64,000 nucleotides of DNA from Schizochytrium sp. TIO01. Its lineage: Eukaryota > Protista > Bigyra: Labyrinthulomycetes. The DNA is taken from NCBI GenBank assembly GCA_004764695.1, contig SMSO01000037.1:2766747-2830746 (forward strand). The letters run 5' to 3'. Under the pieces are notes generated by a model. It did not search any database, was not told where the DNA came from, and was given only the letters and a program-made list of their open reading frames with translations. How positions within the stretch are numbered: the first letter of the stretch is position 1; each line of letters begins with the position of its first letter. This document shows positions 2,109 through 60,910 of this stretch, piece after piece. Made by a program: the position numbers and the translations under genes.

Positions 2109-4454
2109 CTAGAGCTCTTCATCATCATCAAGCGCAGCGTGCATAGGGGCTAGAGCACTTTGGTTATTACTACGAGAGGAAGAGGATCTTCGTTTGGTGC
2201 GTGTTCGCCCACCTGAAGTTGAATTTTCTGCTGTACCCGTATGCTGGTCTTCAGAGCCAGCTAATTCATTTCTACTTTCTACAGTGGCATCAATTGATGA
2301 AGAGGTAGACGACCTCTTCTTACGGGACGATTTTTTTCCGGAAGAACTCTCTCCCTTGGATCTCCCCTTTGATCTGCTGCTAAGGTTCTCAAGAGGTACA
2401 TTGTCACTTTCACTGCTAGCTTTAGCACTTATTGGCTGCTCCTCTTTACTTTCACCTTGTGCAAGAACATTTGATTTTGTAAGACTATGTTTCCTTTTTG
2501 ATTGGCTGTCACTGCTTGAACTTGCGGATTTCCTACGCGTCTTTTCTGCCACAGTATTGTCGTTGCTTTCTTCATTGTTTTCTGCTGACTTTGCCTCGCT
2601 TGCCGAATCCGATCTAGCTGTTACGTCACGGTCTGATTCGGCACGAAAGGAAGATGAAGATGTGACTGCACGCTGAGGGGTAGTGGCTCGGAATGATGAT
2701 GATTGAGCACGAGCAACCGGATTTGTCTCCATGTTTGGTTTCGCTCGCACCGCATTGTTAAGTGCCATCTCGAGAGGGAGGTTGGTCTGAGATCGAGGTA
2801 CTACTACGGAAGGCAATGCCGGCTTGCTGAGCCCTGATTCAAGATCTGCCTCACCTATTGGACCCTGTTCTCCAGATTTGAAGCTAATTCGGATGTCATC
2901 GAGGAATGTGTGCAGATCATTGGTGTAAGACTGCAGTAAGGTGACACTATGACGCATTTGTGAAGACAGCTGGAATGCACGAAGCAAATGGGCTTCCTCG
3001 AAAGTATTGGATCCTTCAATTTTACCTCCATCTTTGCCTGTATCTCCCGTCCTCTTCGTTTTGTTACGTAAAATAACATGCGTGGTGGCATGAAAGGGAA
3101 ATGTTTTACTGAGGCCCCAGATGTGTGGATGATACATAATGCAAAGGACTGTTTGACAGAGAAAAGTAGAAAAAATCGAGAGGAGATTTACGACTTTGGC
3201 TCGGAACCAAACATCAACCAGATTATTAACAATGACGAGAAAAGGCAGCGTAAGAATCCACACTCCAACAAAGAGCCAGAACTTTTTGTAAAAGGCTCGC
3301 TTTTGCTTATAAGTGCGTAAGGTAATCGCGACTGCATAGGTGAACCATCCAAAGGCAACGCATCGCAATCCAACAAAAACAGCACCCGGAACAGTTTCGT
3401 AGACATATACAATGTCGGCTGGGTCAACGAAATAAACGTAGTAAACCCAGCAGCCAATGCTTGAAATGATGTAGATTGTCATGTAAGCAGAAAGACGTAC
3501 ACGACCGCGGGCTGAGATCTTGTGGCGAACAATGGTCCATCCCTTGGCCACAAGAACAACCATGAGCAAAAGCATGAATTCCGCCAAAAGTGAGAATACA
3601 ACACCAGCAGCTTCAAGGCCGTCTTGGTTAATACCAGTTTCTGAATACTGAGTGTATAAAGCTGTTTGCAAAAGGAGAGAGAGCATAGAGCAAAAGATTG
3701 AACTCATGAGAAGCTGAACACTGTAGTGAAACTTTTGTTCCTTACGGAGAATTATGATTGTACGCACGGCGAAAATAGCGAGCAGAAGGTAGAGCGCGAA
3801 AAAAGCAATAGCTGTCTCACGATACCAAATTTTATCTGCGCTAAAGTACATATTCGGACCCTGACCGTTGGTCAGGTTAAGATGGTACTTAATATCGAGA
3901 GAATTCGCACAATATCTCGAAGTGCAGGTAGATTTGCAATTACCAACCGAAATGAACATCCACCGCGATCGGTAGGTATTCATCTCGGTTTCTAGTGTAA
4001 CAGATGACCATTCTCGGCCATCGTCATCCGTATATGTTGTTACTTGGCGCCCCCCTGGAAGAGGCAAGTACATGCCACCATCCATACTAGCAATTTGTGC
4101 CTTTTCGTAGCACTTGAGTCCTTGGTTGTAAGCTCTTTCCCAATAGCCAAACTCTTTTTGTACACCGCTTGAGTCACCACCCTTGTAAAAGAGCATGACT
4201 GATGGTTTAGAGGCTGCATTAGATGGGTAGTCTACGCGCATCTCAAGTTTGCCCTTTAGATCATAACCTGATTTGACCGGGTTGAACACGAAGCGGTCAA
4301 GGTACATCCAAGTCTCACTACCTCGATAGGAGCCCTCAACAATTCCACCATGCGCTGGGGTTGTTAATTGGCTGACGATGCAGAAAAGCATCGCCATAAC
4401 GTTTAAGCTGCGCCATGCGATCGGGTGAAACATTGTCCTTGTGCTGCCAACCAT
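2109..4454 (-). CDS. TMEM145/GPR180-like (intimal-thickness-related receptor, GOST-family) 7TM protein
   Basis: 781 aa: hydrophobic signal-like segment, luminal domain (WMYLDRFVF, RWMFISVGNC, Y.L.LTNG, YFSAD), then seven TMs with LVAKGWTIVR and YVYETVPG motifs, and a long Ser/Lys/Arg-rich disordered tail. The true start may be a downstream Met. Confidence 0.85.
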   Translation of the reverse strand: MVGSTRTMFHPIAWRSLNVMAMLFCIVSQLTTPAHGGIVEGSYRGSETWMYLDRFVFNPVKSGYDLKGKLEMRVDYPSNAASKPSVMLFYKGGDSSGVQKEFGYWERAYNQGLKCYEKAQIASMDGGMYLPLPGGRQVTTYTDDDGREWSSVTLETEMNTYRSRWMFISVGNCKSTCTSRYCANSLDIKYHLNLTNGQGPNMYFSADKIWYRETAIAFFALYLLLAIFAVRTIIILRKEQKFHYSVQLLMSSIFCSMLSLLLQTALYTQYSETGINQDGLEAAGVVFSLLAEFMLLLMVVLVAKGWTIVRHKISARGRVRLSAYMTIYIISSIGCWVYYVYFVDPADIVYVYETVPGAVFVGLRCVAFGWFTYAVAITLRTYKQKRAFYKKFWLFVGVWILTLPFLVIVNNLVDVWFRAKVVNLLSIFSTFLCQTVLCIMYHPHIWGLSKTFPFHATTHVILRNKTKRTGDTGKDGGKIEGSNTFEEAHLLRAFQLSSQMRHSVTLLQSYTNDLHTFLDDIRISFKSGEQGPIGEADLESGLSKPALPSVVVPRSQTNLPLEMALNNAVRAKPNMETNPVARAQSSSFRATTPQRAVTSSSSFRAESDRDVTARSDSASEAKSAENNEESNDNTVAEKTRRKSASSSSDSQSKRKHSLTKSNVLAQGESKEEQPISAKASSESDNVPLENLSSRSKGRSKGESSSGKKSSRKKRSSTSSSIDATVESRNELAGSEDQHTGTAENSTSGGRTRTKRRSSSSRSNNQSALAPMHAALDDDEEL

Positions 4455-44665: not shown

Positions 44666-46939
44666 TTAAACATCGTTGGGGCGAACAGTGTTCGAGTCGT
44701 TCTTGGCCTGGTTCTCGTCAGATGCCTGAGAGTCCTTGTCAGCGGTACCAGTCTTGGACTTGTCATGCACCCAGTACTTGCGGTCTTCGGAGCGGAAGAA
44801 GAATTCCGCAATCAAAAACCAGATGTAAGAGCAAATACCGATGACACTAAGGTACACAAAGGGGTAGAGACCTGGGAAATCAGTGATGACACCCTCCCAG
44901 CACAAGTTGAGCTCTGCGTTACCAAAGGATGCACACGTGGCTGGCTCATTGAGGGTAATGTTCTCATAAACCTCCGAGAAAACGCTGAATTCAGAAGCAT
45001 CGTAGTTGAGCATATCCGGGTTGGCCTCCACAAGGTCATACAGAGTTTGATTGCAAGCATCGGTGCCTTCATTGCAAGCAGCCATGTTCTGGTACAGAGG
45101 TACATCAGCTGCATATAGTGAGATATCAAATCCTGGGCAGCCGTAGTACTGATTAAACAACGAAGCGGCAGCTTCACCAAGGCGAGACTCAAGAGCACTT
45201 GTACTGACGCACCACTCACGGTCCATTTCGAGCGTGCTGGATCCACCAATACCGCCACCGCCTTCGCAAGAGCCATCACGCGTGATCAGGCCTGCATCTA
45301 CAAAATATTGTGGAACAATCGGACGGGGCTCCGGGTTATTGTACGGAATGTACTTGGAGGTCTTGGCAGCGAATTTGGGACTGAGAGCGCCAAGAGTGCA
45401 CTCGGAGGCCTCGTAGTAGAAAGGAAAGGAGCTGTCGAGGACACGGCCGGAAGAGTTGTCAGCATCATAGGTTGGGCAGGTCGCGACACCGCACTCGCAA
45501 GTGTTGATCGGGTTGGTGGAGCTGTAGTCAAGCGGGACGCAGCTCACATCTGGGGTAAAGGGCTCAATGTACATGGCAAAAGTGTTGCCAAAAAGCAAGA
45601 TACCAACGAGCTTGGAGAATGCCTCGGAACTACGCACTGCGCCTGCCAAAGCGCCCTTCTCGGTAGCAGGCACCTGGCCCATGATAAGAGAAAGCTCAGT
45701 GGGCACTACGGGCGAAGCGAGGAAGGAAAGTCCAACAGCAATGTAAGAGAGGTTTGCAGAGGGCGCAAAGGCAAATGCAATACCAACAAGGATGGTCCAA
45801 ATCATCGAGAAATGAATTGCACCCTTGAGACCAAAAAGCTTGACAAGAATTGGAGTGAGAAGGGCTGCACCAAGAGCAGATCCGAGCCAGATCATAACGG
45901 TAAACATGATGAAGAGATTGACTTCGGACTGCGTAAAGCGGCGCAACCACCATCCTCCAGTCACAGCTTCCATAGCACCGACACCCATCCAGGCGAAGGC
46001 AGCAGAGGCCCAAAGGCAGGAGAGGTATGCGCTGCGCTTGATGAGGGCAACGAATCCAAACGGGTTAGCACGCTTCCAGTCGATGATTCGTGTACGCTCA
46101 TCACGGTGGAGTGACTCCGGGAGGAAGAAGAGCATAAGAATGGCTACGAGAGATGAGAATCCAAGACCAACGCCATACGAAATGTTAAAGAGTTGGTTGT
46201 AGGGTTCAATGGCAGCCTCGCCTTCCTCAAGGTCTTTGCCTGTAGTGGCTTGGCTGATGGCAAGACTGATGAGAGCACCAGTGAGCAGACCGAGAAAGTA
46301 GCCGAATCCTTGGAGGATACCCATGTTGGTGGGAAGGCGATCTGGGCGAGATACATCTGAGATATATGCGATACCATGCGGTGTAACAGGGGAGCTTGCA
46401 CCGAGGCACATACCACCAAAGATGAAGAGGCCAAGTGTTTGAGTGTTCCATCCGATGAGAAAGAGGGCTCCAGCGCATGCATAGCCAGAGAGGGCGCCGA
46501 TGAGGAGAGGGCGTCGGCCCCAACGATCAGAGAGTGTGCCTACAAAGGAGCCCATAAGGAAGGTCATTGTACGAAGGAGGGAGAGGGTAAGAGTGAGCTT
46601 GCGCTGGGACTCGTCGGTTGCGGCAAAGCAATCATCTTGGACTTCAGGGTCGCATCCTTTGACCTGCTGGTTAACAATTAGATGAATCGAGAGAGGCATA
46701 GCGATGAAGAGCATTAGCACATATGAGCCGGCGGCGGTAAGCACCGCAAAGGTTACAAGTGCGACTTGACGCTGCTGACGGCGAAAATTCTGAACCACAG
46801 ACTTAGAGAGCGACCCATCATTGACAGCCGTGGGGTCCTTGACTGTGGCAGTCGCAGCCGCGGTGTCGGGCACCTCAGGAATGACCTCATTGTCCCGGAC
46901 CTGCTCCAGGCTGCTCGTGTTGTCGCCGCTGCCGAGCAT
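44666..46939 (-). CDS. MFS transporter (TetA/MFSD14-like) with large Cys-rich TM11-TM12 loop; paralog A (757 aa)
   Basis: Motif A GTLSDRWGRRP, AYISDVS, LPESL, ANPF, QVPATEKGALAG (TM11) and FPG (start of TM12); 12 hydrophobic segments; ~232-aa insertion before TM12. Confidence 0.9.
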   Translation of the reverse strand: MLGSGDNTSSLEQVRDNEVIPEVPDTAAATATVKDPTAVNDGSLSKSVVQNFRRQQRQVALVTFAVLTAAGSYVLMLFIAMPLSIHLIVNQQVKGCDPEVQDDCFAATDESQRKLTLTLSLLRTMTFLMGSFVGTLSDRWGRRPLLIGALSGYACAGALFLIGWNTQTLGLFIFGGMCLGASSPVTPHGIAYISDVSRPDRLPTNMGILQGFGYFLGLLTGALISLAISQATTGKDLEEGEAAIEPYNQLFNISYGVGLGFSSLVAILMLFFLPESLHRDERTRIIDWKRANPFGFVALIKRSAYLSCLWASAAFAWMGVGAMEAVTGGWWLRRFTQSEVNLFIMFTVMIWLGSALGAALLTPILVKLFGLKGAIHFSMIWTILVGIAFAFAPSANLSYIAVGLSFLASPVVPTELSLIMGQVPATEKGALAGAVRSSEAFSKLVGILLFGNTFAMYIEPFTPDVSCVPLDYSSTNPINTCECGVATCPTYDADNSSGRVLDSSFPFYYEASECTLGALSPKFAAKTSKYIPYNNPEPRPIVPQYFVDAGLITRDGSCEGGGGIGGSSTLEMDREWCVSTSALESRLGEAAASLFNQYYGCPGFDISLYAADVPLYQNMAACNEGTDACNQTLYDLVEANPDMLNYDASEFSVFSEVYENITLNEPATCASFGNAELNLCWEGVITDFPGLYPFVYLSVIGICSYIWFLIAEFFFRSEDRKYWVHDKSKTGTADKDSQASDENQAKNDSNTVRPNDV

Positions 46940-48020
46940 TTTGGCGTTGGTCTACTACTTCTCGTCTGCTGTCGCTGTTGTTGACAGTTAATCAATTCCG
47001 AAGCTTTCTTCTCGTCCACGCTGCTTTACTGACTGACACTAGAATCGCTCAACAAGTTGTTCGAGTCTAGGGCTCGCTGACAACAAGAGGGGTCTGCACC
47101 CTCGTTAGCCCCCGCACTCGCTGATTGGTTGATTGATGGACTGATTTGATTATCTTCGGGTCGTCGTTGCTGTCGCTGGTCTTGTTGTTGTCGCCGCCTG
47201 GGCGAGTTTCGGTTTTGCTGGTCTGCTGGATGCGTTCGCGTGGCGGATTTGGCTGCGGTTGATCTTGATCTGTAGCCACGCCTTGGACCTGTCTGGAGAG
47301 AGAACTGCCACGTTCTAGGAAGCACGCTCTGCCATCTAACAACTAGCTATAGCTAGCACATTAGTCAGACCAGTTCTTTACTTATATTAAATTTATTTTA
47401 AAAAAAAAAAAAAAAAAAAAGGGAAAGAAGGAAGTTTGAAAAACTTACTCACTTATTGTATGTCTATCTGAGTTATAAACTTATTTAAAGAACTTATTTT
47501 TTTTATTTTAAAAAAAAAATAGCAAAGAAAGAGAGAAAAACCTTCTTTAAAAGTACAACAAGCACCAAGGTTTTACAAACATCAAATCAACCATCAGGAA
47601 GAAGAAGAAGAAGAAGAAGAAGAAGTCCATTATCCACCTCGTCGCAAATTACTTGCAGACTTTCTCCGACGCTTTTCTTCTGATTGGCGTGCGCCCTTCG
47701 GCCCCTCTCCAGACATAGAAGAGGTCGCCGTCGAGAGACGCTCAGTAAGCAAGCAGCCATATGCTCAGCTTTTGCTAAAAGAAAGATGCTGCAGCAGCAA
47801 GTCTTCGTGACTAATCCATCAATCTTACAGCATCCTCTCAAAACCGCCACTGTTAGGAACTTTATTTCGTACTTCAGTAGGTACTTTCCCACCTCCCTAT
47901 TCCAAGTACCCATTAAGCTCTCCCTGCTCATCTTTCTAGCCCTTATCAGTTTCCAATCGGGTCCTTCACTTTGTTGCACAAGTTTCTTTATCCAAAAGCA
48001 AATTCCATTGTGTTTTTTAC

Positions 48021-48055
<35 letters not shown>

Positions 48056-48326
48056 TTCTTATCTTTTTTTAAATGTCAAATTGAAAACATGTATATTCTG
48101 CTTATTCGCCTATCTTCTATCTTCTTCGACGCAAACCTCTGAAAAAGAAGCAAATCGCCGTTTCGCTCTCTCTCTCTCTCTCTCTCTCAAATCCAACAGT
48201 GCGAGACTGCTTATTGCAATAAAAGAAAGCGCGAGCGGCTCTCAAAGACGATCTGCATCTGCTGCCTCCCTATTTCCGCCTATTTCCGCCTGTTTCTGCC
48301 TATTTCTGCTCTCCACAGACACAGAC

Positions 48327-48361
<35 letters not shown>

Positions 48362-49438
48362 CTGGAGGCCGGGTATTCTGATTTTGCGCCAATCAGCGCC
48401 AATCGCGTCGGCCTGAGGCGGAAGGAAGAGGGCGCGAGCGTGCTTGGATTCATTCGCCCACCTGCAGCAGCTCAGGGGTCCCGAGAGCGGCGCAGCAGTG
48501 AGTGAGTGGGTAAGTAAGTAAGAAAGTGAGGAAGTGAATGAGAGGCGTAGGCACCGAGGTACCCAGGGTACCTCCATTCCCTGTCTCACTCATCGCGAGA
48601 GAAACTCGCGATGATACTCGGGTTACAGTTTACCGTAGCTATGCAGTAGCGCTAGTTTCTTTGTTTCTTTAAAGTTCTTTTGATTCAAGCTCTTTCTTTG
48701 TTTGTTATCACTAACCTTTCTCTGCTTCGCTTGGGAATACTAACTCGAGCGCTCAAATGCACACGAGTTTCGCTCTTCTCTTTCAGAGTATAGCGTTGTA
48801 AGAGAGGATTGGATCACTGTTTGCCTCTAGAGCTAGAAAACCTAGAAAATAAACAAAATCATGGAGGTGCGTGTATGTATGCATGCATGTATGTAAATGT
48901 ATGATTGATATTGATAGTCAGGTCAGTGAGCGGAGAGAGAACTCTCAGAGGGGCTTCTTTCGCAGGGCCCTCAGGAGACAGAGAGTCAGTAAATGACAAA
49001 CAGACTACTGTCACCTTCGCCAAGGGCCTTCAGATGCTAGGGAGCTGTCGCTATCTCTTTAATTATGGATGGTTTTCCAATTTGATTGTCGTGCTTCGTT
49101 TTTCACTAGCTAGAGACGCTGGAAAGCATTGTCTAAAAGCTCGCGTGCAAAACTATACGCACGATAACAATATGCCAATTCATGCATAGAGCTAGCTGCC
49201 TAAGTGCTGCCACCAGCAGCTGCAAAACCGCCTGCCCGTTCTCCGCTCACTTTCAAAGGAAGAAGAAGGAAACGAGAGTAAAGTCCAATCATAAGTTATA
49301 CATTTCATTCGTTCGTTCATTCGTTCGTTCATTCATTCATTAATCCATTCGTGGAAATAAAAACCGAAAGAAGAAAGGATGCGATTTCAACGTGTGTGAG
49401 ATCATCAATAAACCTGTGCCGTCTCCTTGAGAACGAAG

Positions 49439-49483
49439 GTCAGTCAGTCAGTCAGTCAGTCAGTCAGTCAGTCAGTCAGTCAG
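49439..49483. repeat. (CAGT)n microsatellite
   Basis: About 11 tandem copies. Confidence 0.9.
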
Positions 49484-51266
49484 AGCCCTTCAGCATTCGC
49501 TCCACTTCCACCGCACTCGTCGCATCGTAGTACGTGACTGACTCAACTGCATCCCACCATACCTTCTCGTTTCGACAGCCACAGCCAGTCTTGAGCCAGG
49601 GCGTCTCGTTCGAGCTGGGAGGGCGCCTGCTTGAGGCCGACTTGCCAAAGCAGCCAAACTAAGTCATCACATGCATCCATGCAAAAGATGCAAAAGGAAC
49701 CTCGCACTTTTTGCCAACTCCTCAGGCAGGAGCAGACAGACCCAGCACCCCTTGTCCGCTTTTTCCGCACGTTCATTATATATATATATATACATATTGA
49801 TTTTTAATTAATTATTTAATTATTTTTAAAATTATAGTTTTTATTATTTCATTTTATATTTTATTTTATTTTATTTTTCGACTAAAATAGAGAAATAAAT
49901 GGATAAATAAATGTAAACCTACACGAAAATTCCACAAGAGCAAGGGTCAACCTCCTGCGAGCCTCCTCCTCAAAGACAAAGGAAACGGAAGAAGGCTTTC
50001 ATTTTAGAACAGAAAAGCAGAAACAAAAAAAAAAAGGCGAGGAAAAAAAGAGGGGGAAAAGAGAAAAGAATTGAAGACTACAACAACACTAATGAAGGGT
50101 AGACAGTAAGGGGCTTCCTAGCGCTTTTGGGATAGAAAAGAAATTGCAATGCGATGCGCTGCTCAGCTGCAAACAAACCAACCAAGCCCTCGCCGCGATG
50201 CGGCATCTCCACTCTGCGCAACGCCGGTTGGAGCCACCGGCCATGTGGCAGCACGCACCCTTCTCTTCGCTCCGCAGAAGGATCTTGGACTGGCTGCGCC
50301 TTTCTTTATAAATATATAAATATATAAATATATATTTATATATATTTATAATAGAGAGAGAGAGACAGCCTTGCTCCCTTCTAAGCTGCCGTTGTAAGGC
50401 AATTTGCAGCAATTTGCGGCAATTTGCGGCAATTGCAAGCGCAGCAGCGCTAGTCTTGAGGCCCGTCGCAGCTCGAGGCCGTGCAAGCAACATCGCCAGG
50501 ACAGGGCCAGCCAGCATCGGCAGCGGCGGCGGCGAAGGCGACACCAGAGACTGCCGCGGCGAGAGGCGACCGCGGCACTTACAGGCTCACAGAGGTGCCC
50601 GAAACCCCCAGAAACGAAACCCCTTTCCTGGGAAGCATATCCGTTCCCAACGAGAGAAGCAAAAGCACATGAGCAGTGTCCACTTGGGATGGGCGGATCT
50701 TCTGGCTTGAGTTTCCTCCCGCGCCGGAGCTGAAGGCTTTGGCCGCCTCGTCCCCTCTGGCTGCCTGCAGCTACTCGAGAGTGCCTGCCTGCATTGGTTT
50801 GGCACCAGCCGCTGCGCTGTAATCCCGCCGAGACTGCGGTCCTAAGGTCTCGTTTCAAATCGCTCAGGCAGACAACGGAGGAGCATTTGGACGATGCCGC
50901 CGCACTCGAGGAAGTCAATCAATCAACCAATCGATCGATCGATCGATCGATCGATGGATCGCCCGTCGTCCCTTCGGGAGCCCTCGGCGGTTTCCTTCGC
51001 TCCCCGCTCGTCTTCGAGGCTCCGCGTCGCGCAGCTCCAGGTCCCGGAGCGAGCGAGTTCGCGCCGTCGTCGTTCGCAGCGACGGCGCCTTCGATCGAAG
51101 GCGTGTTTCCCTGGAGCTGCTCGCCTCGAGAGACCGGCGTCACTTGCGCATCATCACGAGCGGCGCCGCGCATGAGTTGTTGAGGCGTGGCTGCGTGCAT
51201 GTCTTGCGGTGGTGATGCCTCTGCGAAGGCAGGAGCAGAGCAGATCACACCTGTTTCGCAATGGCG

Positions 51267-51267
<1 letters not shown>

Positions 51268-51312
<45 letters not shown>

Positions 51313-51366
51313 ATGGTGGTGGTGGTGGTGGTGACGATGGCGGTGGTGGTGATGATGGTGGTGGTG
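51268..51366. repeat. (CTG)15 followed by an imperfect (GTG/ATG)n trinucleotide tract
   Basis: 45 nt of perfect CTG, then atggtggtggtg... Confidence 0.9.
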
Positions 51367-52661
51367 CCCTTGACGCCCATTCACGCCTGAGCTGCAGAGA
51401 GAAGACGGTACACGAGCCAAGCCGTCGAAATCAAGCACGGCCAGACTAAGGAGGGGGTCCTTGTGGCCACCGTTTCCGGCACTCTGCCGCAGACGGTGCA
51501 AACTTCGTTGACGTTGCAGACACCGTCGTCGCTCAGGCACGAGCAAAGCTGCGATCGGCTCGCTCGCTCACCCTTTGCCTTTCGCCTTCTGCCTCGTCCC
51601 TGTCTTCGAGCTCGTGCATGAATCAATGCAATACAATGCAATGCAAGGCAAGACAAGGCAAGGCAAGGGGACGCATCGTTATCGTCCCAGCCTGCCAGAA
51701 CCCAAGTTTGTTCCTCCTCCTCCTCTCTAGGATACGCTCATTGGCTTTGAGCCGGTTGCGTTTGCAATATTACAGTGCGCGTTGTGGACCCGCCGGGACA
51801 GGATACGATGGGAAAGGTTCCCTTTGGCGTGCTCAGGTGGAGAGAGGATGGCGGTGGCGAATGCTTCCGCGAGAGGGGTGCAGGTTTCCGTGTGTTTTAC
51901 GAATGGGAATCCTTCAAGTCACTTATACAACCAAGAACAAAAGTTTTATTATTAAAAAGAAAAGAAAAGAAGTTTAATTAAGTTTTTTTTTTTATTTAAA
52001 ATAAATTATTTTTTTTAAATTAAAAATAGAAATAAAACAAAAACATAGAACTAAAGCATATTCAATATATATATATATTTTAAAATAAAAAAGTTGTAAA
52101 GAAGAAGAAGAAAAGGGCCACAAGACGCGGTGTATGAATGTATGCATGTATGCATGTATATGAAGAAGAGAAAGAGGAGGAAAGAGGAAGAAAGAGGGAA
52201 AATACGGTAAAACGAGCTTCATAAAACAAATAAAAACCAACCCTCGAAAGTCTGTCTCTGCAGAAGATACGAATGCAGTGCAGATGCGAGGCTTTCTGAC
52301 GGTGCTCGCGTCTCCTTCAAGGTGTTTCCTCTCCTTTGGAACTGGCTTCGCTCGAGGATATACCCATTAGCTAGTTCAGCTTCGAGGGTGGCGTGTGCAT
52401 CATCTCTGAAGGCCATGTCGAAGGTTCCAAACCCTCGATTCGGCGCCCTCGAAAGTCTCAAGTTGGCATCAGTTGGACCAGCAGAAATGCAAAGATAGGC
52501 GTGGCTGCGATGACTTCTCTCTCCGCTCATTCAGCCATTTTCACAGACAGGCCACGAGCGCAGCAAAGCAAAAACATGATCCCAGAGGACGGCATATCTA
52601 ACCTTTCCATTGGTTTATCAGTTTTTGTTTCACCTTCGTTTCAAGCTGTTTATTAATTTTC

Positions 52662-52749
52662 GTTTGTTTGTTTGTTTGTTTGTTTGTTTGTTTGTTTATT
52701 TGTTTGTTTATTTGTTTATTTGTTTGTTTGTTTGTTTGTCTGTTTGTTT
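52662..52749. repeat. Imperfect (GTTT)n microsatellite
   Basis: gtttgtttg... with ATTT variants. Confidence 0.9.
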
Positions 52750-54531
52750 CTCTCCTCGTTTCTTCACCTTTTCAAGAAAACGAAAACCACGCTTAAGACA
52801 GGAAAAAGGCAGCCGCGCGGCCGACCGATCTTGTGATGATGCAAGCCGCAAGCCTCAAAGACGGCACCCTCCGAGCCCATAAAGGCCCTCCGCCGACGAC
52901 GGCGGTGCATGCATCGCCGCGCTTTGATCGAGTTCTTGCGCCGCTGCAACCAATGACTCAATAGTCGATAGCTAATTCAGACCTTGCGAGCTTGCTGTCG
53001 GTCACTCCGCTCTTCTCCCATCCCAGTGACCTCTGCTTTGCGTCCCTCTGAGTTTGTTTCCCGCTTTATTTGCGTCATCTTCCTTAGGAAAGAACTGAGG
53101 ATGATCAATTAGAGAGAGAGCCTCTCTCTCTCTCTCTCTCTCTCAGGGAGTGCTCCTTTCTCTGGTCTGAGCTTGCGCAACGATCTGTCTCCGTCTCTTA
53201 GAGACCTTCTTCTGATGTTGACTCTCTCTGTCTCTCTCTGTTTGTTTGTTTGTTTGTTTGTCTGTCTCTCTGTCTCTATCTTTCCATCTGACTGATACGT
53301 GTAGGCACTTACCTACCTGCCTGCCTATGGCTGCCTACTTCTTCTCTCGCCGAAAGGCCACGAGCTTGCGAGTGCATTGCTCAAGGAGGGGGGACCTCCA
53401 CAGAGTGAAATCTGCCGCCCCCGCTGCGAAAGAGGCGCCGCATTCCACCCTCGGCGTGTGATGTCAACTCGCCGGTCTTCACTGGCGCCCTTGAGTTCTT
53501 TTCTTCGCTGTCCTCAGCCTTCTTTTCCACTTGGGGCTAGTAGCAAGTGCCTAGGTAGTTGTAGGTAGTTTTAGATTTATTGTTATTTTTTTTTTATTGT
53601 TATTTTAAAGAAAGAAAAAAAGTTTAAATCGTAATAACATATTTAAAAAGAAACAGAAAAAGCAAAAGGAAACATTTGGTTTGAAAAAAATAAAAAAGTT
53701 TATGAAAATTACAAATTGTAGGTTTGAAGTTCAAAGCTTAACCTCAAGTTCAAAATCTACTGCTGGATTCTGATTCCTGGAATGAAGATGAAAATTGTGG
53801 CCTTTTCGAGTTCAATCTTTGTCCTCAATAAATCAACCAATACATCCATCCATCCATCAATCAACTAATCCATCAACCAAAGGGCGGAGAATGCCATGCT
53901 TTCCGCTCGCAGTGCATCGACCGCCGGTGCATCTTTCGTCGCTCCGTCCTTGGGCTCCTCTCATGAGTTCCTTCTTTCTTCTTAATCGATCAGAAGCAAA
54001 CACACCTTCTTTTTCCCTTCAACTTCGCTTGAACGAACGAACGAATGAATGAATGAATAAGTGAACAAGTCAACAAGTACACCAACATCTTTTTCTCTTT
54101 CTCCAAACTCCATCATATTTCAACTCCTTCGCTCACAAATGGGACCGGCTGAGTAATACATACCTACTGCCCTCTACCTGTCTGCTCCGCAGCGGCTTTG
54201 TATCCTAGCTTTAGCACTGCTGAGCGGGAAAGCGGAGATCATTACTTCCCTCGAGCTTTCCCAGTTTCTCCAGTCAACTGCATAAGAAAACCGCCACCTG
54301 CTTAATCCTAGGAAATATAATTCATCAATTGGTCCTTCGTATCCACCCAGACCTATCCCTTCGAAGGCCACGGGAAGCATCCCTCTGAAAAAGCGCGGCT
54401 TGAGCCACCTGACTGACACTGGCACGCCAGCTCAGCTCAGATCGGCCCTGCGTTTGCCGCTGCTGGGCCCGCCACAAGTGCAGCGCCTCGACTTTTGCTT
54501 CTTCCTTACGCATCACGTGCGCGTGAACGTA

Positions 54532-54636
54532 CGAATGAAATGAATGAAAATGAATGAAATGAATGAAATGAATGAAATGAATGAAATGAATGAATGAATG
54601 AATGAATGAATGAATGAATGAATGAATGAATGAATG
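54532..54636. repeat. (GAAT/GAAAT)n microsatellite
   Basis: 9-bp GAATGAAAT units grading into a pure GAAT run. Confidence 0.9.
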
Positions 54637-55848
54637 AGTGTGCGAAGGCAGTCGTAGTAGTATCATGTACGGGTCCTTGCAGAACCCGAGTCGGCTGAGG
54701 GCTCTTTGGGGAATGGAGAAGAAGAGGGCCGCCGCGCCTCGAAGAAGAATCTAGCTTTCAGCGGCGCTTCGTGTTGGTTGGCAAGTGCCGAGTCGGCCAG
54801 AAGAGGCGGAAAGGGCGGATCCAGCTGACCCCGACTGCGTTCGGCCTTCAACCGCCGCTCATGCGCGCCGAATTGCGTCCAATCGAACTTGATTCAGAGC
54901 CCGAGCGAGAAAGCTGTCCTTCAAGCACTCAAGCGAGCAATCCATCAATCAATCAAACAAACAAGCGAACAAGCGAACTCACCTGAAATTGCGTTGCGCA
55001 GATCCACCCAGCGCTACTGCAGACGCAGTACCTCACTCTGCGGCAGCTCGGGGTCCCTTCAGACAGACAGGTATTCGTACATACGGACATACGGACAGAC
55101 AGACAGAGCCTTCTGCGAGGTCTTGGGAAGAGGAAGCTTCAAGTAGATCTTGCCTTCCGCTGCTGCTAGCGCGGTCTTTGGCTGGCCAGGCCTCCGTAGC
55201 AACAGCGGAAGGCGAGCTTGGTTCTTGGAGTGAGGAGTGGGTTGCCCAAGGCGCCGTTCTTTGTGCCGTTCTTTGTGCCGTTCTTCTCAGTCCCTTCTGA
55301 TCCTACGGATCATCCCAATTCTCGTTCTGACGGCGGTTTCGCAGAACTCGTACAGAACGAATAGCTGGCTCGCTAGGCTTCCGGCGCTAGGACCTGCTAG
55401 GGCGTCGCGCCGCGCCGGCCGGTCCCAAACCCATTCACTCCTCACGTCGTCGTCCTCACTCATTCACTTATAGTCACTTATAGTCACTTATACTCAATTA
55501 TACTCACTCATAATCACTCACTCAGTCGGATGCAAAGAAGCTTTGACTTTTCATAGGATCTTCTAGTTCTTTTTTAATTGTTTAATTAGAATAACATAAA
55601 TTGTTCATAAACAAAAACGGCTGCTTGGGGCGCCATGAGGTGGCGTCGCTGGCACCTTCGTCCTCCCTCGTCCCTTCGCCTTCCGCTGCTTTCCTTTCGG
55701 TTCCTCCCTCCCGAGGTCTCCTCCTCCTCGTCCTCCCTCTCGGCGGCATTGTCGCTTGCTTGCTTGCTTGCTTGCTTGCTTGCGCTGAGAGCATTTGGGT
55801 TTCACAATCGGGCGGACTGCTCTCACTGTGCTATCGATCAGCGCACAC

Positions 55849-56283
<435 letters not shown>

Positions 56284-58672
56284 ACTCATCGCTGACGTCG
56301 CAGAGACCGCATCCCGAGCGCTCTCCCACCGTCTGTCTGTCTGTCTGTAAGTCTGTCAGTTTGGCTGGCTGGCTGGCTGGCTGACCGGGCGTTCTCTGAG
56401 AACTTGCAGCAGCAGCAGGAGGAGGAGGAGGAGGCGAAAGCCTGAACGATCGACGGATGCTCGGAAAGCAGCGGCGATCAGACGATCAGACGATCGATCG
56501 ATCCTCTACTAGGCGAGGCTAGACGATGGATACATGGATAGGCCGTTGGCAGGTCGGCCTTCCTGCAACGCCAGGAAAGAAAGACAGCACATGCGTGGGT
56601 TTCCCCCCCTCCTGGACCCCCGCAGAGGGCCCCACTGTGGGCAGGCTTGAGGAACTTGGGCGGGCGGAATTCAGACCGTCCGAGGCAGACCCGCCAGACT
56701 CCTAGGCTCGGGCTATGTAGCTACTAACTAACTGACTGACTGACTTCTGACTTTTGACTTTGGTTTCTTCTCAGATGGCCATGATAAATAAAAACGATAT
56801 TATGTTATAATAAAAGGGAAAGAAGAGAAGAAGTAATAAAATGAGAGAGAGAAACAAATTGTTGGCAATAAATCAGTAAAAAGAATGCAAATTCAGGATC
56901 TTTACAAGTAAAGATGTTGTTGATTTACCCATCTATAAGTGGAGGCTGTCAAGAGAAGAGTCTTTCTTTGTAAGTAACTTGAGGCCCGACGAAGCAAGGT
57001 GCAGCTAATAACCTGGAGGCGTGGTCGGTGCGTGGCCCAGATCAACCTAGCCTCGTGCGGCAAGCTAACTCTTGGGCAGGCGAAGAAGAGAGCTCTTGCT
57101 GCGTACACTGAATGGGGCTTGTTCTTCTCTAGAGGCTCTATCATCGTGATACTTTGTTTGTTTCTCAGAATCGAAGATTAGAACTGTATCTAGCTGCCTA
57201 CGTACTACCACGACAAGCTGTTTAACCGGTAAGAGTGCATGCACGGAGTGCTAGCACCTCTGAATCGCGCCACATAAGGGGCTCCGCGCTTATTTGCTAT
57301 GGATAGCAGCAGCCTCTGAAGCCATCGCCACGATGGAGGTGATGGATGATTAAAGCTTCTCCGTGCTTCCTTTCTCGCTTCCCTTGCTTGCTTGCTTGCT
57401 TGCTCAGAGGCAGGTCGGGCGAGTCGGCCAGCTCGCTTCACGCAGAGACTTCTTTGGTTTACAATTGTGCAATGTATTTTAAACAAACAAGAAGTACGTA
57501 AACAAAGAGGTAATTAAACTGGACCTTGACTTCGAATGATTGTTTTTCGATTGAAAGTTTTAATTACCTAGAAGAATTAAAAGCGAATGTTGAATTAAAA
57601 TTGGGAGATCAAATATGATAAACAAATACATACATATTTAAAAATAAAATATCATTTTAAAAAAAATTAAAAATTAAAAATCTTCACATAGTGTGCAGAG
57701 TGTGCGCCTCTGAGAGGTTTTCGAATCCTCCTTGTGAAGAGAATATCGTCTCTGTCGTTTGACACCTTGAAGAAGAGAAAGAGAGAGAAAGAGAGAGAAA
57801 GAGAAAAAAGAAGGACGGACTACTACCTACGGTAGTACATATTTCAACTTCGAGAGAGAGCCTGAAGTTTGACGGATTGCCTGTTCTGGAAGAGGAGGGG
57901 ATGGATGAGCCGGAGCACAGGTTATTCTGGCCTAGTTCGTATCCTGCTCCTTAAGGAAGGATGACAGTATCCGGGTTTGCTACTCGAGTACGACAGGAAG
58001 ATGCCTTTAAAAAAATAAAAATAGCAAGATTGACGCCGCTTTTCTTCTAAATAGTATTATTATATATAAATATATATATCTTTTAAGTGAAAAAGAGTTG
58101 TTCCATCGTCAAGATAACGAAGAATTGCAAGGTAAGCCAGGCTTGGCTCAGCGCTAGCCTCGAGCCAGTGTTGGATTGAGCAAATGATTGTTGCGCAGTA
58201 CTAGATGGCTGGCTGTAGGTAAATACAGAAAGAGATGGTATTGTGTGAGAAAGATATCATTCATATCATATTATATAAATTTAGAATCGATGTTGATTAT
58301 CATCATCGTTGGAGCACGACCTCACCATCAGCGACCGCGCTGTGAACAAATCCTCAGGTCTTGAATAAGGCAAACGTGCTGAAGGGGGAGGCATAACTCG
58401 CCGGTGAACAAAGTCAAACACTTGGCCGGTTCCTTACGCGCATGAGGGTTTGTTTTGTACAGCAGTGCGGAGGGAGCATTGGTTGGGCTCAACAGCACAG
58501 AGCTGCATTTGAAGGCGCACGACTTTCTTGCCGGTGATGAAAATCAATACCAGATCACAATGATATGTACACAAAACAGTCCTTTCCTTTCCTTTCCTTT
58601 GGTTAGCGAGTGCCATATATCTAGCCTACAGAGTTTCCCTGGCGCACAGCGGAGCATTAATGCAGCTACTTG

Positions 58673-60910
58673 TTAAACATCACCTGGGCGAACTGCTGCG
58701 TTGGCGGGCGGCTCCTCAGCAGGGGTTTCGGTCTCCTTGCGATGAATCCAGAACTCGCGATCCTGGTCCTTGAACCACACCTCAGCAATAATGAAAGCCA
58801 CATAAGAGACCACACCCAGACCACTCAAGTAAATCAGCGGGTAGAGACCAGGGAAGTCAGTAATAACACCCTCCCAGCAAACATTCAGGTCAGCCGTACC
58901 CATAGACTCGCAGGATGCTGCCTCTCCACGTGTGATGTTCTCGTAAATACCAGTGAAACGAGCAAATTCAGTAGCATCGTAGTAGAAAACATCTGGGTTC
59001 GAGGTAGTCTCATTGTACAGAGCTTGATCGCATTCAGCAGAACTCGGATTAGCACTGCATACAACCTGGTTCTCGTATCTGTTCATGTCTTGAATATAAA
59101 AATTGAAGTCAAAGCCAGGGCAACCAAAGTCCTGGTTAAAAAGCTCCGCAGCCGCCGTCGAGACGCCACGACCCTCAAGAGTAGCAACACTTACGCACCA
59201 TTCGCGCTGCACAGTGACAGTAGCAGAGTCGCCACGTCCACCGCCGCCCTGGCAAGTATCACCACGAGTTACAAGACCAAGGTCAACAAAACTTTGAGGG
59301 ACGATAGGGTTTGGCTCCGGGCTTTTGAAGGGTACATGCGCGCTAGGCTTTCCAGCAAACATAGGGCTAAGCTGACCGAGGGTGCATTTGGACGGCTTGT
59401 AGTAGAATGGAAAGTCTGCGCTCATCACACGACCCGAAGAGTTCGTCGCATCGTATGTCGGGCAAGTGTTTACGCCACAGTCGCAGGTGTTGATCGGGTT
59501 GCTTGGACTGTAGTCCAGTGGAACACAGCTCACATCAGGCACAAATGGCTCGATGTAGCCAGCGAATGATGTGCCGAAAATAACAATGCCCATCAGCTTG
59601 CTAAATGCCTCCGAACTACGCACTGCACCTGCAAGAGCACCCTTCTCTGTGGCAGGAACTTGTCCCACGATGAGTGCAAGCTCAGTAGGAACAACAGGGG
59701 CAGCAAAGAACGAGAGACCCACAGCAACGTAGGAGAGATTTGCAGTAGGAGCAAATGCAAAGCCAAAACCAACAATGATGGTCCAGATCATGCCAAAGTG
59801 AATGGCGTTTTTAAGTCCCATCAGCTTGACAAGAATCGGCGTAAGGAAGGCTGCACCAAAGGCTGAACCGAGCCACACAGCGACGATGAAAATAATAAAG
59901 ATGTTCACATCAGTTTGCATGTACCGGCGCAACCACCAGCCACCTGTTACAGACTCAAGTCCGCCAACAGCCATCCATGCGCAAGCTGCACTGATCCAAA
60001 GGCACAACAAGTACATATTGCGAGTTACAAGATGTACAAAACCGAAGGGATTTGCTTTGCGCCAGTCAACAAAAGTGCTGCGTTCCGTCTTTTTCAGAGA
60101 TTCAGGGAGAATGAAGAACATCAAGACTGTCACGCTTCCTGCAAAAGCAAAGCCTGTGCCATACGAAATATTAAAAAGTTTGTTGTAAGGCTCAAGAGCG
60201 GACTGGTTTTCATCCTCGGATGCACGGCCGCGGGTGGACTCGCTAATAAGGAGACTCAGCAAAGCACCGGAAAGAAGGCCCATGAAGTATCCGCAACCCT
60301 GGAGAATACCCATGTTGGTTGGCAGGCGATCCGGACGGCTGATATCAGAGATGTAGGCAATGCCATGGGGAGTTACAGGCGAGCTAGCGCCGAGAACCAT
60401 ACCAGCAAAGAGAAAGAGTCCGAGCTTTTGCGTCTGCCATCCAATCAGCAGCAACAATCCAGTTGTGGCATAGCCGGTAAGAGCGCCAAGGAGAAGAGGC
60501 TTGCGGCCCAAACGATCGCTAAGCGTACCAAGGAAGGAGCCCATGAGGAAGGTCATTGTGCGCAACAGTGAGAGTGTAAGCGTAAGCATGAGCTGGGATT
60601 CATCCGTCGGGGCAAAGCAGTCATCCTGAACCTCCGGATCGCATCCATTGCTTTGGTTTACGATAAGGTGAATTGAGATAGGCATGGCAATAAAGAGCAT
60701 CAAAATGTAGGAGGCACCAGCCGTAAATGTGCAGGATGCTGCCATAATGGCCTGCTTTTGCTGCTGGCGAAAGTCCTGCACTACAGACTGGCTAATGCTC
60801 CCGTTGTTCTTGCCCAATGACTTGCTTTCATTTACAGACATCGACTGGGCCGAGCCGACCTCAACGGGAACAGCTCGTTCATCGACCTTTTCCGAGCCGC
60901 TGCCAATCAT
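58673..60910 (-). CDS. MFS transporter (TetA/MFSD14-like) with large Cys-rich TM11-TM12 loop; paralog B (745 aa)
   Basis: Colinear with paralog A (GTLSDRLGRKP, AYISDISRPDRLPTNMGILQG, QVPATEKGALAGAVRSSEAFSK, CWEGVITDFPGLYP), with the same 12 loop cysteines. Confidence 0.9.
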   Translation of the reverse strand: MIGSGSEKVDERAVPVEVGSAQSMSVNESKSLGKNNGSISQSVVQDFRQQQKQAIMAASCTFTAGASYILMLFIAMPISIHLIVNQSNGCDPEVQDDCFAPTDESQLMLTLTLSLLRTMTFLMGSFLGTLSDRLGRKPLLLGALTGYATTGLLLLIGWQTQKLGLFLFAGMVLGASSPVTPHGIAYISDISRPDRLPTNMGILQGCGYFMGLLSGALLSLLISESTRGRASEDENQSALEPYNKLFNISYGTGFAFAGSVTVLMFFILPESLKKTERSTFVDWRKANPFGFVHLVTRNMYLLCLWISAACAWMAVGGLESVTGGWWLRRYMQTDVNIFIIFIVAVWLGSAFGAAFLTPILVKLMGLKNAIHFGMIWTIIVGFGFAFAPTANLSYVAVGLSFFAAPVVPTELALIVGQVPATEKGALAGAVRSSEAFSKLMGIVIFGTSFAGYIEPFVPDVSCVPLDYSPSNPINTCDCGVNTCPTYDATNSSGRVMSADFPFYYKPSKCTLGQLSPMFAGKPSAHVPFKSPEPNPIVPQSFVDLGLVTRGDTCQGGGGRGDSATVTVQREWCVSVATLEGRGVSTAAAELFNQDFGCPGFDFNFYIQDMNRYENQVVCSANPSSAECDQALYNETTSNPDVFYYDATEFARFTGIYENITRGEAASCESMGTADLNVCWEGVITDFPGLYPLIYLSGLGVVSYVAFIIAEVWFKDQDREFWIHRKETETPAEEPPANAAVRPGDV

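Follow-up and report, generated by a model that had tools for sequence, protein, structure and literature searches.

A 64,000-nucleotide stretch of the genome of Schizochytrium sp. TIO01 (Labyrinthulomycetes; contig SMSO01000037.1, positions 2,766,747 to 2,830,746), referred to below as the window, carries two genes, A and B, for transporters of the major facilitator superfamily (MFS), the largest family of secondary transporters. Their distinguishing feature is a large cysteine-rich insert between the last two transmembrane (TM) segments, TM11 and TM12 (Table 1). Both reading frames run without internal stops, as judged from the open reading frames (ORFs) and their translations, and the two products are 63% identical over their full length. 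A first-pass annotation of this DNA had called them a tandem pair. They are indeed intact paralogous neighbours, but they belong to a row of five paralogues rather than two. The same annotation had placed inserts of about 232 and 235 residues between TM11 and TM12, and hydropathy and alignment reproduce those limits exactly.

Table 1. Genes A and B and their features (positions in the window; CDS, coding sequence)
Feature	Position	Strand	Description
Gene A	44666..46939	-	Single-exon CDS, 757 aa; MFS transporter with TM11-TM12 ectodomain; orthologue Hondaea FCC1311_016982
Gene A, TM core (TM1-TM11)	45566..46765	-	Residues 59-458; from hydropathy and positive-inside analysis; 74-84% identical among paralogues
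Gene A, ectodomain	44870..45565	-	Residues 459-690; 232 aa, 12 Cys, 3 N-glycosylation sequons, net charge about -25
Gene A, TM12 and cytosolic C-tail	44669..44869	-	Residues 691-757; D/E-x-x-Y/F-W motif after TM12, VRP near the C-terminus
Gene A, MFS motif A	46508..46540	-	GTLSDRWGRRP, cytoplasmic loop TM2-3; read from the sequence
Gene A, loop TM1-2 Cys hairpin	46622..46657	-	GCDPEVQDDCFA; same membrane face as the ectodomain
Gene B	58673..60910	-	Single-exon CDS, 745 aa; paralogue of A; orthologue Hondaea 'Hippocampus abundant transcript-like protein 1'
Gene B, ectodomain	58847..59551	-	235 aa, 12 Cys
Gene B, MFS motif A	60497..60529	-	GTLSDRLGRKP
Gene B, loop TM1-2 Cys hairpin	60611..60646	-	GCDPEVQDDCFA

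Hydropathy and MFS landmarks give the same layout for both proteins: 11 TM segments, the insert, then TM12. These landmarks comprise motif A (loop 2-3), D-x-S-R-P-D-R (loop 4-5), its C-half counterpart Q-V-P-A-T-E-K-G (loop 10-11) and a basic central loop of 29 residues. Lysine and arginine are abundant in the odd-numbered, inner loops (3/10, 2/20, 7/29, 1/9 and 2/18 residues) and scarce in the outer ones (1/29, 0/3, 1/24, 2/17 and 0/4). Twelve hydrophobic segments, motif A in loop 2-3 and this inner-loop bias together mark A and B as MFS proteins. Motif A in loop TM2-3 fixes an N-in topology, and the inner-loop enrichment together with the landmarks therefore puts the TM11-TM12 insert on the non-cytoplasmic face. 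It is predicted to lie outside the plasma membrane or, equally, in the lumen of an organelle.

Two other elements share that face. The cysteine hairpin of loop TM1-2, which the first-pass annotation had reported as identical in A and B and as lying on the same side as the insert, is so in both respects, and of the 18 family members whose sequences include the region, 17-18 have its cysteine pair. Loop TM7-8 carries T-G-G-W-W-L-R-R (45920-45945, about residues 327-334 of A), invariant in the four intact paralogues of this genome and nearly so in the wider family; it probably helps to form the outer vestibule to which the ectodomain also belongs. On the other side, the N- and C-terminal tails are 40-60 residues long, of low complexity and poorly conserved (36-47% identity). 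Two short motifs were seen in the C-tails. V-R-P stands 3-5 residues from the C-terminus in most of the paralogues of this genome and of Hondaea (TVRPNDV, AVRPGDV, SVRPTAQT and others; in A and B the tails concerned are at 44669-44740 and 58676-58720), and D/E-x-x-Y/F-W directly follows TM12 in most of the family. Both are possible sorting or regulatory signals.

The insert itself is rich in cysteines. In A these are residues 467, 481, 483, 488, 514, 558, 577, 601, 622, 629, 669 and 680, and the 12 cysteines of B align with them, as had been proposed; all 12 are invariant in the five paralogues. Also in agreement with the earlier account, an NSS and an NIT sequon are common to the A and B inserts. 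Across 21 family members the insert varies from 190 to 325 residues with 1-5 sequons, and each member has an even number of cysteines (10, 12 or 14), of which the first eight and the last are invariant in 21/21. An even count and invariant positions are as expected of a fully disulfide-bonded extracytoplasmic domain. All 21 inserts are acidic, with 20-51 aspartate and glutamate residues against 7-17 lysine and arginine residues. The joints to TM11 and TM12 are free of indels throughout the family except in P0012, which has 4 extra residues just ahead of TM12. Indels in the insert are concentrated in its second, helical half.

Substitution rates follow the same division. Among the paralogues the TM core is 69-84% identical, with a nonsynonymous divergence (dN) of 0.13-0.24. 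For the whole insert the figures are 61-65% and 0.28-0.32, for its N-terminal half 66-77% and 0.18-0.28, and for its C-terminal half 47-60% and 0.36-0.46. The insert is constrained, yet it has evolved about 1.5-2 times faster than the TM core by dN, and the helical half is the most variable part. The comparison is made on dN and amino-acid identity; ratios of dN to synonymous divergence (dS) were set aside because dS is saturated.

A model of the A insert made with AlphaFold2 (AF2) from a 22-sequence alignment that included distant members reached a mean predicted local distance difference test score (pLDDT) of 82.9 and a predicted template modelling score of 0.64. The five models ranged from 72.9 to 82.9, and only the GGGG loop (residues 101-106 of the insert) fell below 50. 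It replaced a model from the five own paralogues alone, for which the pLDDT was 42.6. In the predicted structure an irregular, cysteine-rich N-terminal part with short strands holds the eight invariant cysteines. It is followed by helices at 122-140, 148-166, 173-181 and 190-205, and a last strand at 216-226 leads into TM12. The insert is thus predicted to be neither cytosolic nor disordered: topology puts it on the non-cytoplasmic face and AF2 models it with confidence.

Library searches returned no relative of this fold. Foldseek found no match to the model among 350,542 PDB chains (best E = 1.4, template modelling score about 0.13). The VIA structure search and BFVD likewise gave none; in the VIA lists the helical half took up the places and the N-terminal half was hardly sampled. 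Searches of Pfam, PDB sequences and the ESM Atlas with the insert yielded nothing usable. A DUF1190 match in one of five members (E = 0.025) was treated as noise. The original suggestion of a folded ectodomain of no recognised kind therefore stands against Pfam, PDB sequences and PDB and BFVD structures, and the insert is supported, on the strength of the model, as a folded extracytoplasmic cysteine-rich domain new to the libraries tried.

One explanation for such a loop is trivial: that it is an unspliced intron, a misassembly or a disordered spacer. The likelihood of this is negligible, and nothing was found in its favour. The frame is open across the insert in all five genomic copies and the 12 cysteines are invariant. 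Independent transcript-derived proteins from MMETSP and the Joint Genome Institute (JGI) contain the loop, and the complete MMETSP transcript ORFs that closely match sister paralogues of A and B carry it, which answers the concern that it might be spliced out. The dN of the insert is limited while synonymous sites are saturated, and the fold prediction is confident. Taken together, these findings exclude an artefact.

A six-frame search of the whole assembly (64 Mb, 37 contigs) with the insert found five copies and none elsewhere. All five are on contig 36, on the minus strand, head-to-tail within about 35 kb; besides A and B they comprise three copies 3.7-15 kb past the right end of the window (L002, L005 and L003; paralogues C, D and E). 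Since synonymous sites between the paralogues are saturated (proportion of synonymous differences 0.67-0.98), the duplications are ancient. In maximum likelihood trees each of the five groups with its own counterpart in Hondaea fermentalgiana: A with FCC1311_016982 (support 99/98), B with a 'HIAT-like' protein (100/100), D with 016932 (99/95), E with 016892 (88/89), and C with a Hondaea-specific pair, 016952 and 016942 (83/79). The six Hondaea genes share one 1.1-Mb contig, and their locus tags, where given, are near each other. As the orthologues are one-to-one, the array already existed when the two genera diverged, and none of its members has since been lost. By this saturation and branching order the duplications are old, and the claim that the insert was retained after duplication extends to five old paralogues with counterparts in another genus.

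Paralogue D (L005) differs from the JGI protein P0006 by one extra base in a TTTTTTCC run (a T6/C run) at L005:2741-2811, which is at about 2840530-2840600 of contig 36 and outside the window. The extra base splits the D frame of this assembly into pieces of 296 and 443 residues. Either the frameshift is real and D is a pseudogene in the strain sequenced, or the homopolymer was assembled wrongly.

The family is small, about 25 proteins in all. When 1.84 billion representative proteins were searched by HMMER with a profile built from the five inserts, only 14 matched at E <= 1e-3, and 13 of these are the same MFS proteins or fragments of them with the insert at the same position, flanked by a TM11-like 'FG..FA.YI..F.PD.SC' and a TM12-like 'DFPGLFP'. 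The remaining match, the bacterial P0023 (E = 6e-5), is spurious; it consists of four short stretches in Gly/Asp/Asn-rich repeats and lacks the cysteine pattern. A search with the TM core only gave 20 proteins at E <= 1e-10, all 20 with the insert; no relative without it was found at that threshold. One JGI gene model appears to be split, P0029 ending just past TM11 and P0011 comprising the insert and TM12. The closest proteins are those of Hondaea fermentalgiana, and nearly identical thraustochytrid transcripts exist in MMETSP and JGI. Known taxa are the present genome, Hondaea and Aplanochytrium stocchinoi (MMETSP1346/1348), together with further MMETSP, JGI and EukProt records. A metagenome locus scan with A1 found nothing, and a 25-residue match of metagenome locus L012 to P0011 was rejected, since no family member confirms it by tblastn.

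The check on taxonomic spread that had been suggested earlier thus gives, by profile search, a family of Labyrinthulomycetes wherever the taxon is known, plus one dinoflagellate-labelled record. That record, P0030, is a full member labelled Durusdinium trenchii in NCBI, on a 12.5-kb contig, and annotated as 'Tetracycline resistance protein'. Its protein branches next to the thraustochytrid group, as its sister, and within labyrinthulomycete diversity (95/98), a position that suggests contamination or gene transfer. Two of the EukProt MAKER models, P0019 and P0022, share scaffold_29 (gene numbers 1.16 and 2.37), and P0031 is on scaffold_35; clustering of the family may therefore recur outside the Aurantiochytrium/Hondaea group. 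No stand-alone or otherwise fused copy of the domain was found in the six-frame search of this genome or among the 1.84 billion proteins, and domain and MFS core together appear to form a single isolated, lineage-restricted family.

This distribution bears on the idea that the domain is an adhesion module or cell-surface scaffold, tying the transporter to wall scales, the matrix of the ectoplasmic net or substrate particles. An extracytoplasmic, cysteine-rich, glycosylated and acidic domain in a lineage with peculiar surface biology would suit such a role. It bears no likeness in Pfam or structure searches to any adhesion module, however, and it was never found outside the transporter. Its rigid, linker-less mounting also suits the mouth of a transporter more than outward reach, and adhesion is regarded as most improbable.

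The TM core is of a more familiar kind. Pfam MFS_1 (PF07690, cut-off 33.4 bits) matches residues 70-445 of A (65.1 bits, E = 7e-18) and 65-437 of B (75.5 bits), with a weaker overlapping match to Sugar_tr and nothing over either insert. Among NCBIfam models the core matched Tet(30) (E = 1.4e-10), TetA/B/C/D (E = 1.6e-9) and TIGR00880 (E = 3e-9), all far from membership: Tet(30) scored 40.9 bits against a cut-off of 730 and TIGR00880 37.1 against 131. The nearest solved structure is MFSD10 (6s4m, E = 0.008), and a single-sequence PDB search with the core gave no match. Antiporter motif C in TM5 reads G-x-x-x-G-P-x-x-G-G. Here TM5, GYFLGLLTGAL, keeps the G-x3-G spacing but has GL for GP and GA for GG. 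The link to MFSD14 consists of an automatic 'HIAT-like' name on one Hondaea orthologue; PDB searches gave no MFSD14 match. The placement near TetA, MFSD14 and SLC46 proposed earlier therefore survives as resemblance, through the Tet and MFSD10 matches, and not as membership of any of those families; from its profile matches the core is a distant TetA/MFSD10-like (DHA1-type) relative.

An intact transport core is also relevant to the label of transceptor that the first-pass annotation had attached to A and B. On that view a nutrient or signal outside the cell would bind the ectodomain and be relayed inward by the MFS core, with or without transport. A predicted folded and conserved ectodomain, in an expanded family with a divergent outer half, is what such a receptor might look like. 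Pfam, however, finds the MFS domain alone; no signalling domain or motif was found, and the cytosolic tails are short and poorly conserved. The features needed for transport, motif A and the conserved TM core, are intact, and in known transceptors it is the substrate site that senses rather than an extra ectodomain. The label was dropped, and a transceptor role is considered very unlikely.

Ectodomains in other MFS proteins offer partial parallels. The TetA/DHA1-type proteins (TCDB 2.A.1.2), among them the eukaryotic MFSD10 (TETRAN) and MFSD14A/B (HIAT1/HIATL1), likewise have twelve TM segments, motif A (G-x-L-S-D-R-x-G-R-R/K-P) in loop 2-3 and the signatures of loops 4-5 and 10-11. All of these are proteins of about 400-500 residues with a short TM11-12 loop; A and B differ in their folded TM11-12 domain, of 190-325 residues family-wide, and in the cysteine hairpin of loop 1-2. 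In OATP/SLCO proteins a disulfide-rich ectodomain is likewise mounted on the C-lobe of an MFS fold, but it is Kazal-like and lies between TM9 and TM10. In contrast, the domain of A and B is at TM11-TM12, exceeds it 3-4 times in size, and matches neither Kazal nor any other Pfam family. OATP membership was not supported either, PF03137 giving 19.4 bits against a cut-off of 25.8 (E = 3.6e-4) over TM4-6 only. Large glycosylated, disulfide-bonded outer domains are also found in SLC22 (loop TM1-2) and SV2 (loop TM7-8), in other loops, with other folds and in other lineages.

The idea of docking is modelled on PepT1/PepT2 (SLC15) and Acinetobacter AmpG1, MFS transporters that also have a folded domain in an outer loop of the C-lobe. 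These ectodomains have been reported to dock an enzyme that makes the substrate, trypsin for PepT and Slt for AmpG1 (PMC13507758). They are Ig-like (immunoglobulin-like) and, in 12-TM numbering, are inserted between TM9 and TM10; the 'TM11-12' of AmpG1 is counted in a 14-TM protein whose C-bundle is TM9-14, and the position is not equivalent. The fold predicted here, an irregular cysteine-rich part and a helical part, is not Ig-like. A non-exhaustive literature search found nothing relevant on a TM11-TM12 ectodomain in an MFS protein or on this thraustochytrid family. We know of no MFS ectodomain at TM11-TM12. A domain of this kind in this MFS core, retained in an old tandem array, would be new, and its position in the last outer loop is without precedent in what was found.

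What such a domain does can be approached from where it is mounted. In the MFS scaffold the side of the central cavity is lined by TM11, and TM12 serves as a supporting helix at the periphery (reviewed in PMC8154325). With short joints of near-invariant length to both, the cap has to lie on the outer side of the C-lobe, by the mouth of the cavity. It would be a disulfide-stapled, glycosylated structure held on the C-lobe through these joints, probably packed against the cysteine hairpin of loop TM1-2 and the GGWWLRR loop TM7-8. The N-lobe hairpin, C-lobe loop 7-8 and the cap would together make a structured outer vestibule. This geometry favours a cap with a part in shaping or guarding the way into the outward-facing site, or in docking a partner or a source of substrate, in the manner of PepT1/2, OATP and AmpG1. 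The reading given somewhat better than even weight is accordingly that of a glycosylated, disulfide-stapled cap, on an old TetA/MFSD10-like tandem family, that works at the outer entrance or in docking.

The transporter itself would be expected to be proton-coupled and to carry a small organic solute, which may be cationic; the strong negative charge of the cap would favour cationic ligands or partners. The faster-evolving helical half could give the five or six paralogues different specificities. A more tentative proposal, thought possible rather than probable, is that the domain is a new fold that arose once in Labyrinthulomycetes and serves as a recognition module, its variable half giving the paralogues distinct specificities outside the cell, for example in docking the hydrolases that these osmotrophic decomposers secrete or in capturing cationic substrates.

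Several points weigh against the entrance or docking cap. The model of the insert is built on an alignment of only 22 sequences, and its N-terminal half was barely probed in the structure searches. Any particular role for the cap is conjectural. The contacts among cap, loop 1-2 and loop 7-8 are likewise putative, the AF2 model being of the insert alone. Finally, mouse MFSD14A/B are Golgi/endoplasmic reticulum (ER) proteins (PMC5263138), and one Hondaea orthologue has been automatically likened to them.

The last point leads to a different location. If these proteins reside in an internal membrane (ER, Golgi, vacuole or a lysosome-like compartment), a lumenal domain could protect or stabilise the transporter or serve in its sorting, rather than in capture or docking. 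Topology settles only that the insert is non-cytoplasmic, and the two C-tail motifs, D/E-x-x-Y/F-W and the terminal VRP, could be sorting signals. On the other side, the resemblance to MFSD14 is one of automatic naming, the searches having given a distant similarity to TetA and MFSD10. Five to six one-to-one paralogues with a diversifying helical half also fit diversified recognition better than passive shielding. Neither argument is decisive, and a lumenal role is held to be unlikely but deserving of serious consideration.

In the 11.7-kb spacer between A and B (46940-58672) there is no Pfam-recognisable ORF, and no conserved partner gene was identified. The spacer is rich in microsatellites, including (CAAT)~111 at 55850-56288, (GTTT)22 at 52662-52749 and CTG/TGG runs at 51268-51366; its 50-52 kb stretch has 55% GC and overlapping low-complexity ORFs. 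Other genes in the window encode a TMEM145/GPR180-like 7-TM protein, an axonemal NYD-SP28 protein, an RCC1+SPRY protein and a tetraspanin. The first of these (2109-4454, minus strand) is 781 residues long and combines a TMEM145 N-terminal domain with a GPR180/TMEM145 7-TM domain (E = 4.5e-44); this animal-type family, which resembles orphan receptors, is here found in a stramenopile.

The known ectodomains of MFS proteins, those of SLC22, SV2, OATP and PepT, matter for gating, partner docking or toxin entry. If the domain of the last outer loop does have a fold unlike any in PDB or BFVD, the family described here contributes a structural module not seen before and another way in which the MFS C-lobe can be decorated. 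With few members and a narrow taxonomic range, the family is best viewed as a lead for structural work and cell biology. Thraustochytrids take up dissolved nutrients, which makes surface transporters with accessory domains plausible in nutrient acquisition. In these organisms, relevant both industrially (production of docosahexaenoic acid) and ecologically (marine decomposition), the family would mark a set of lineage-specific transporters.

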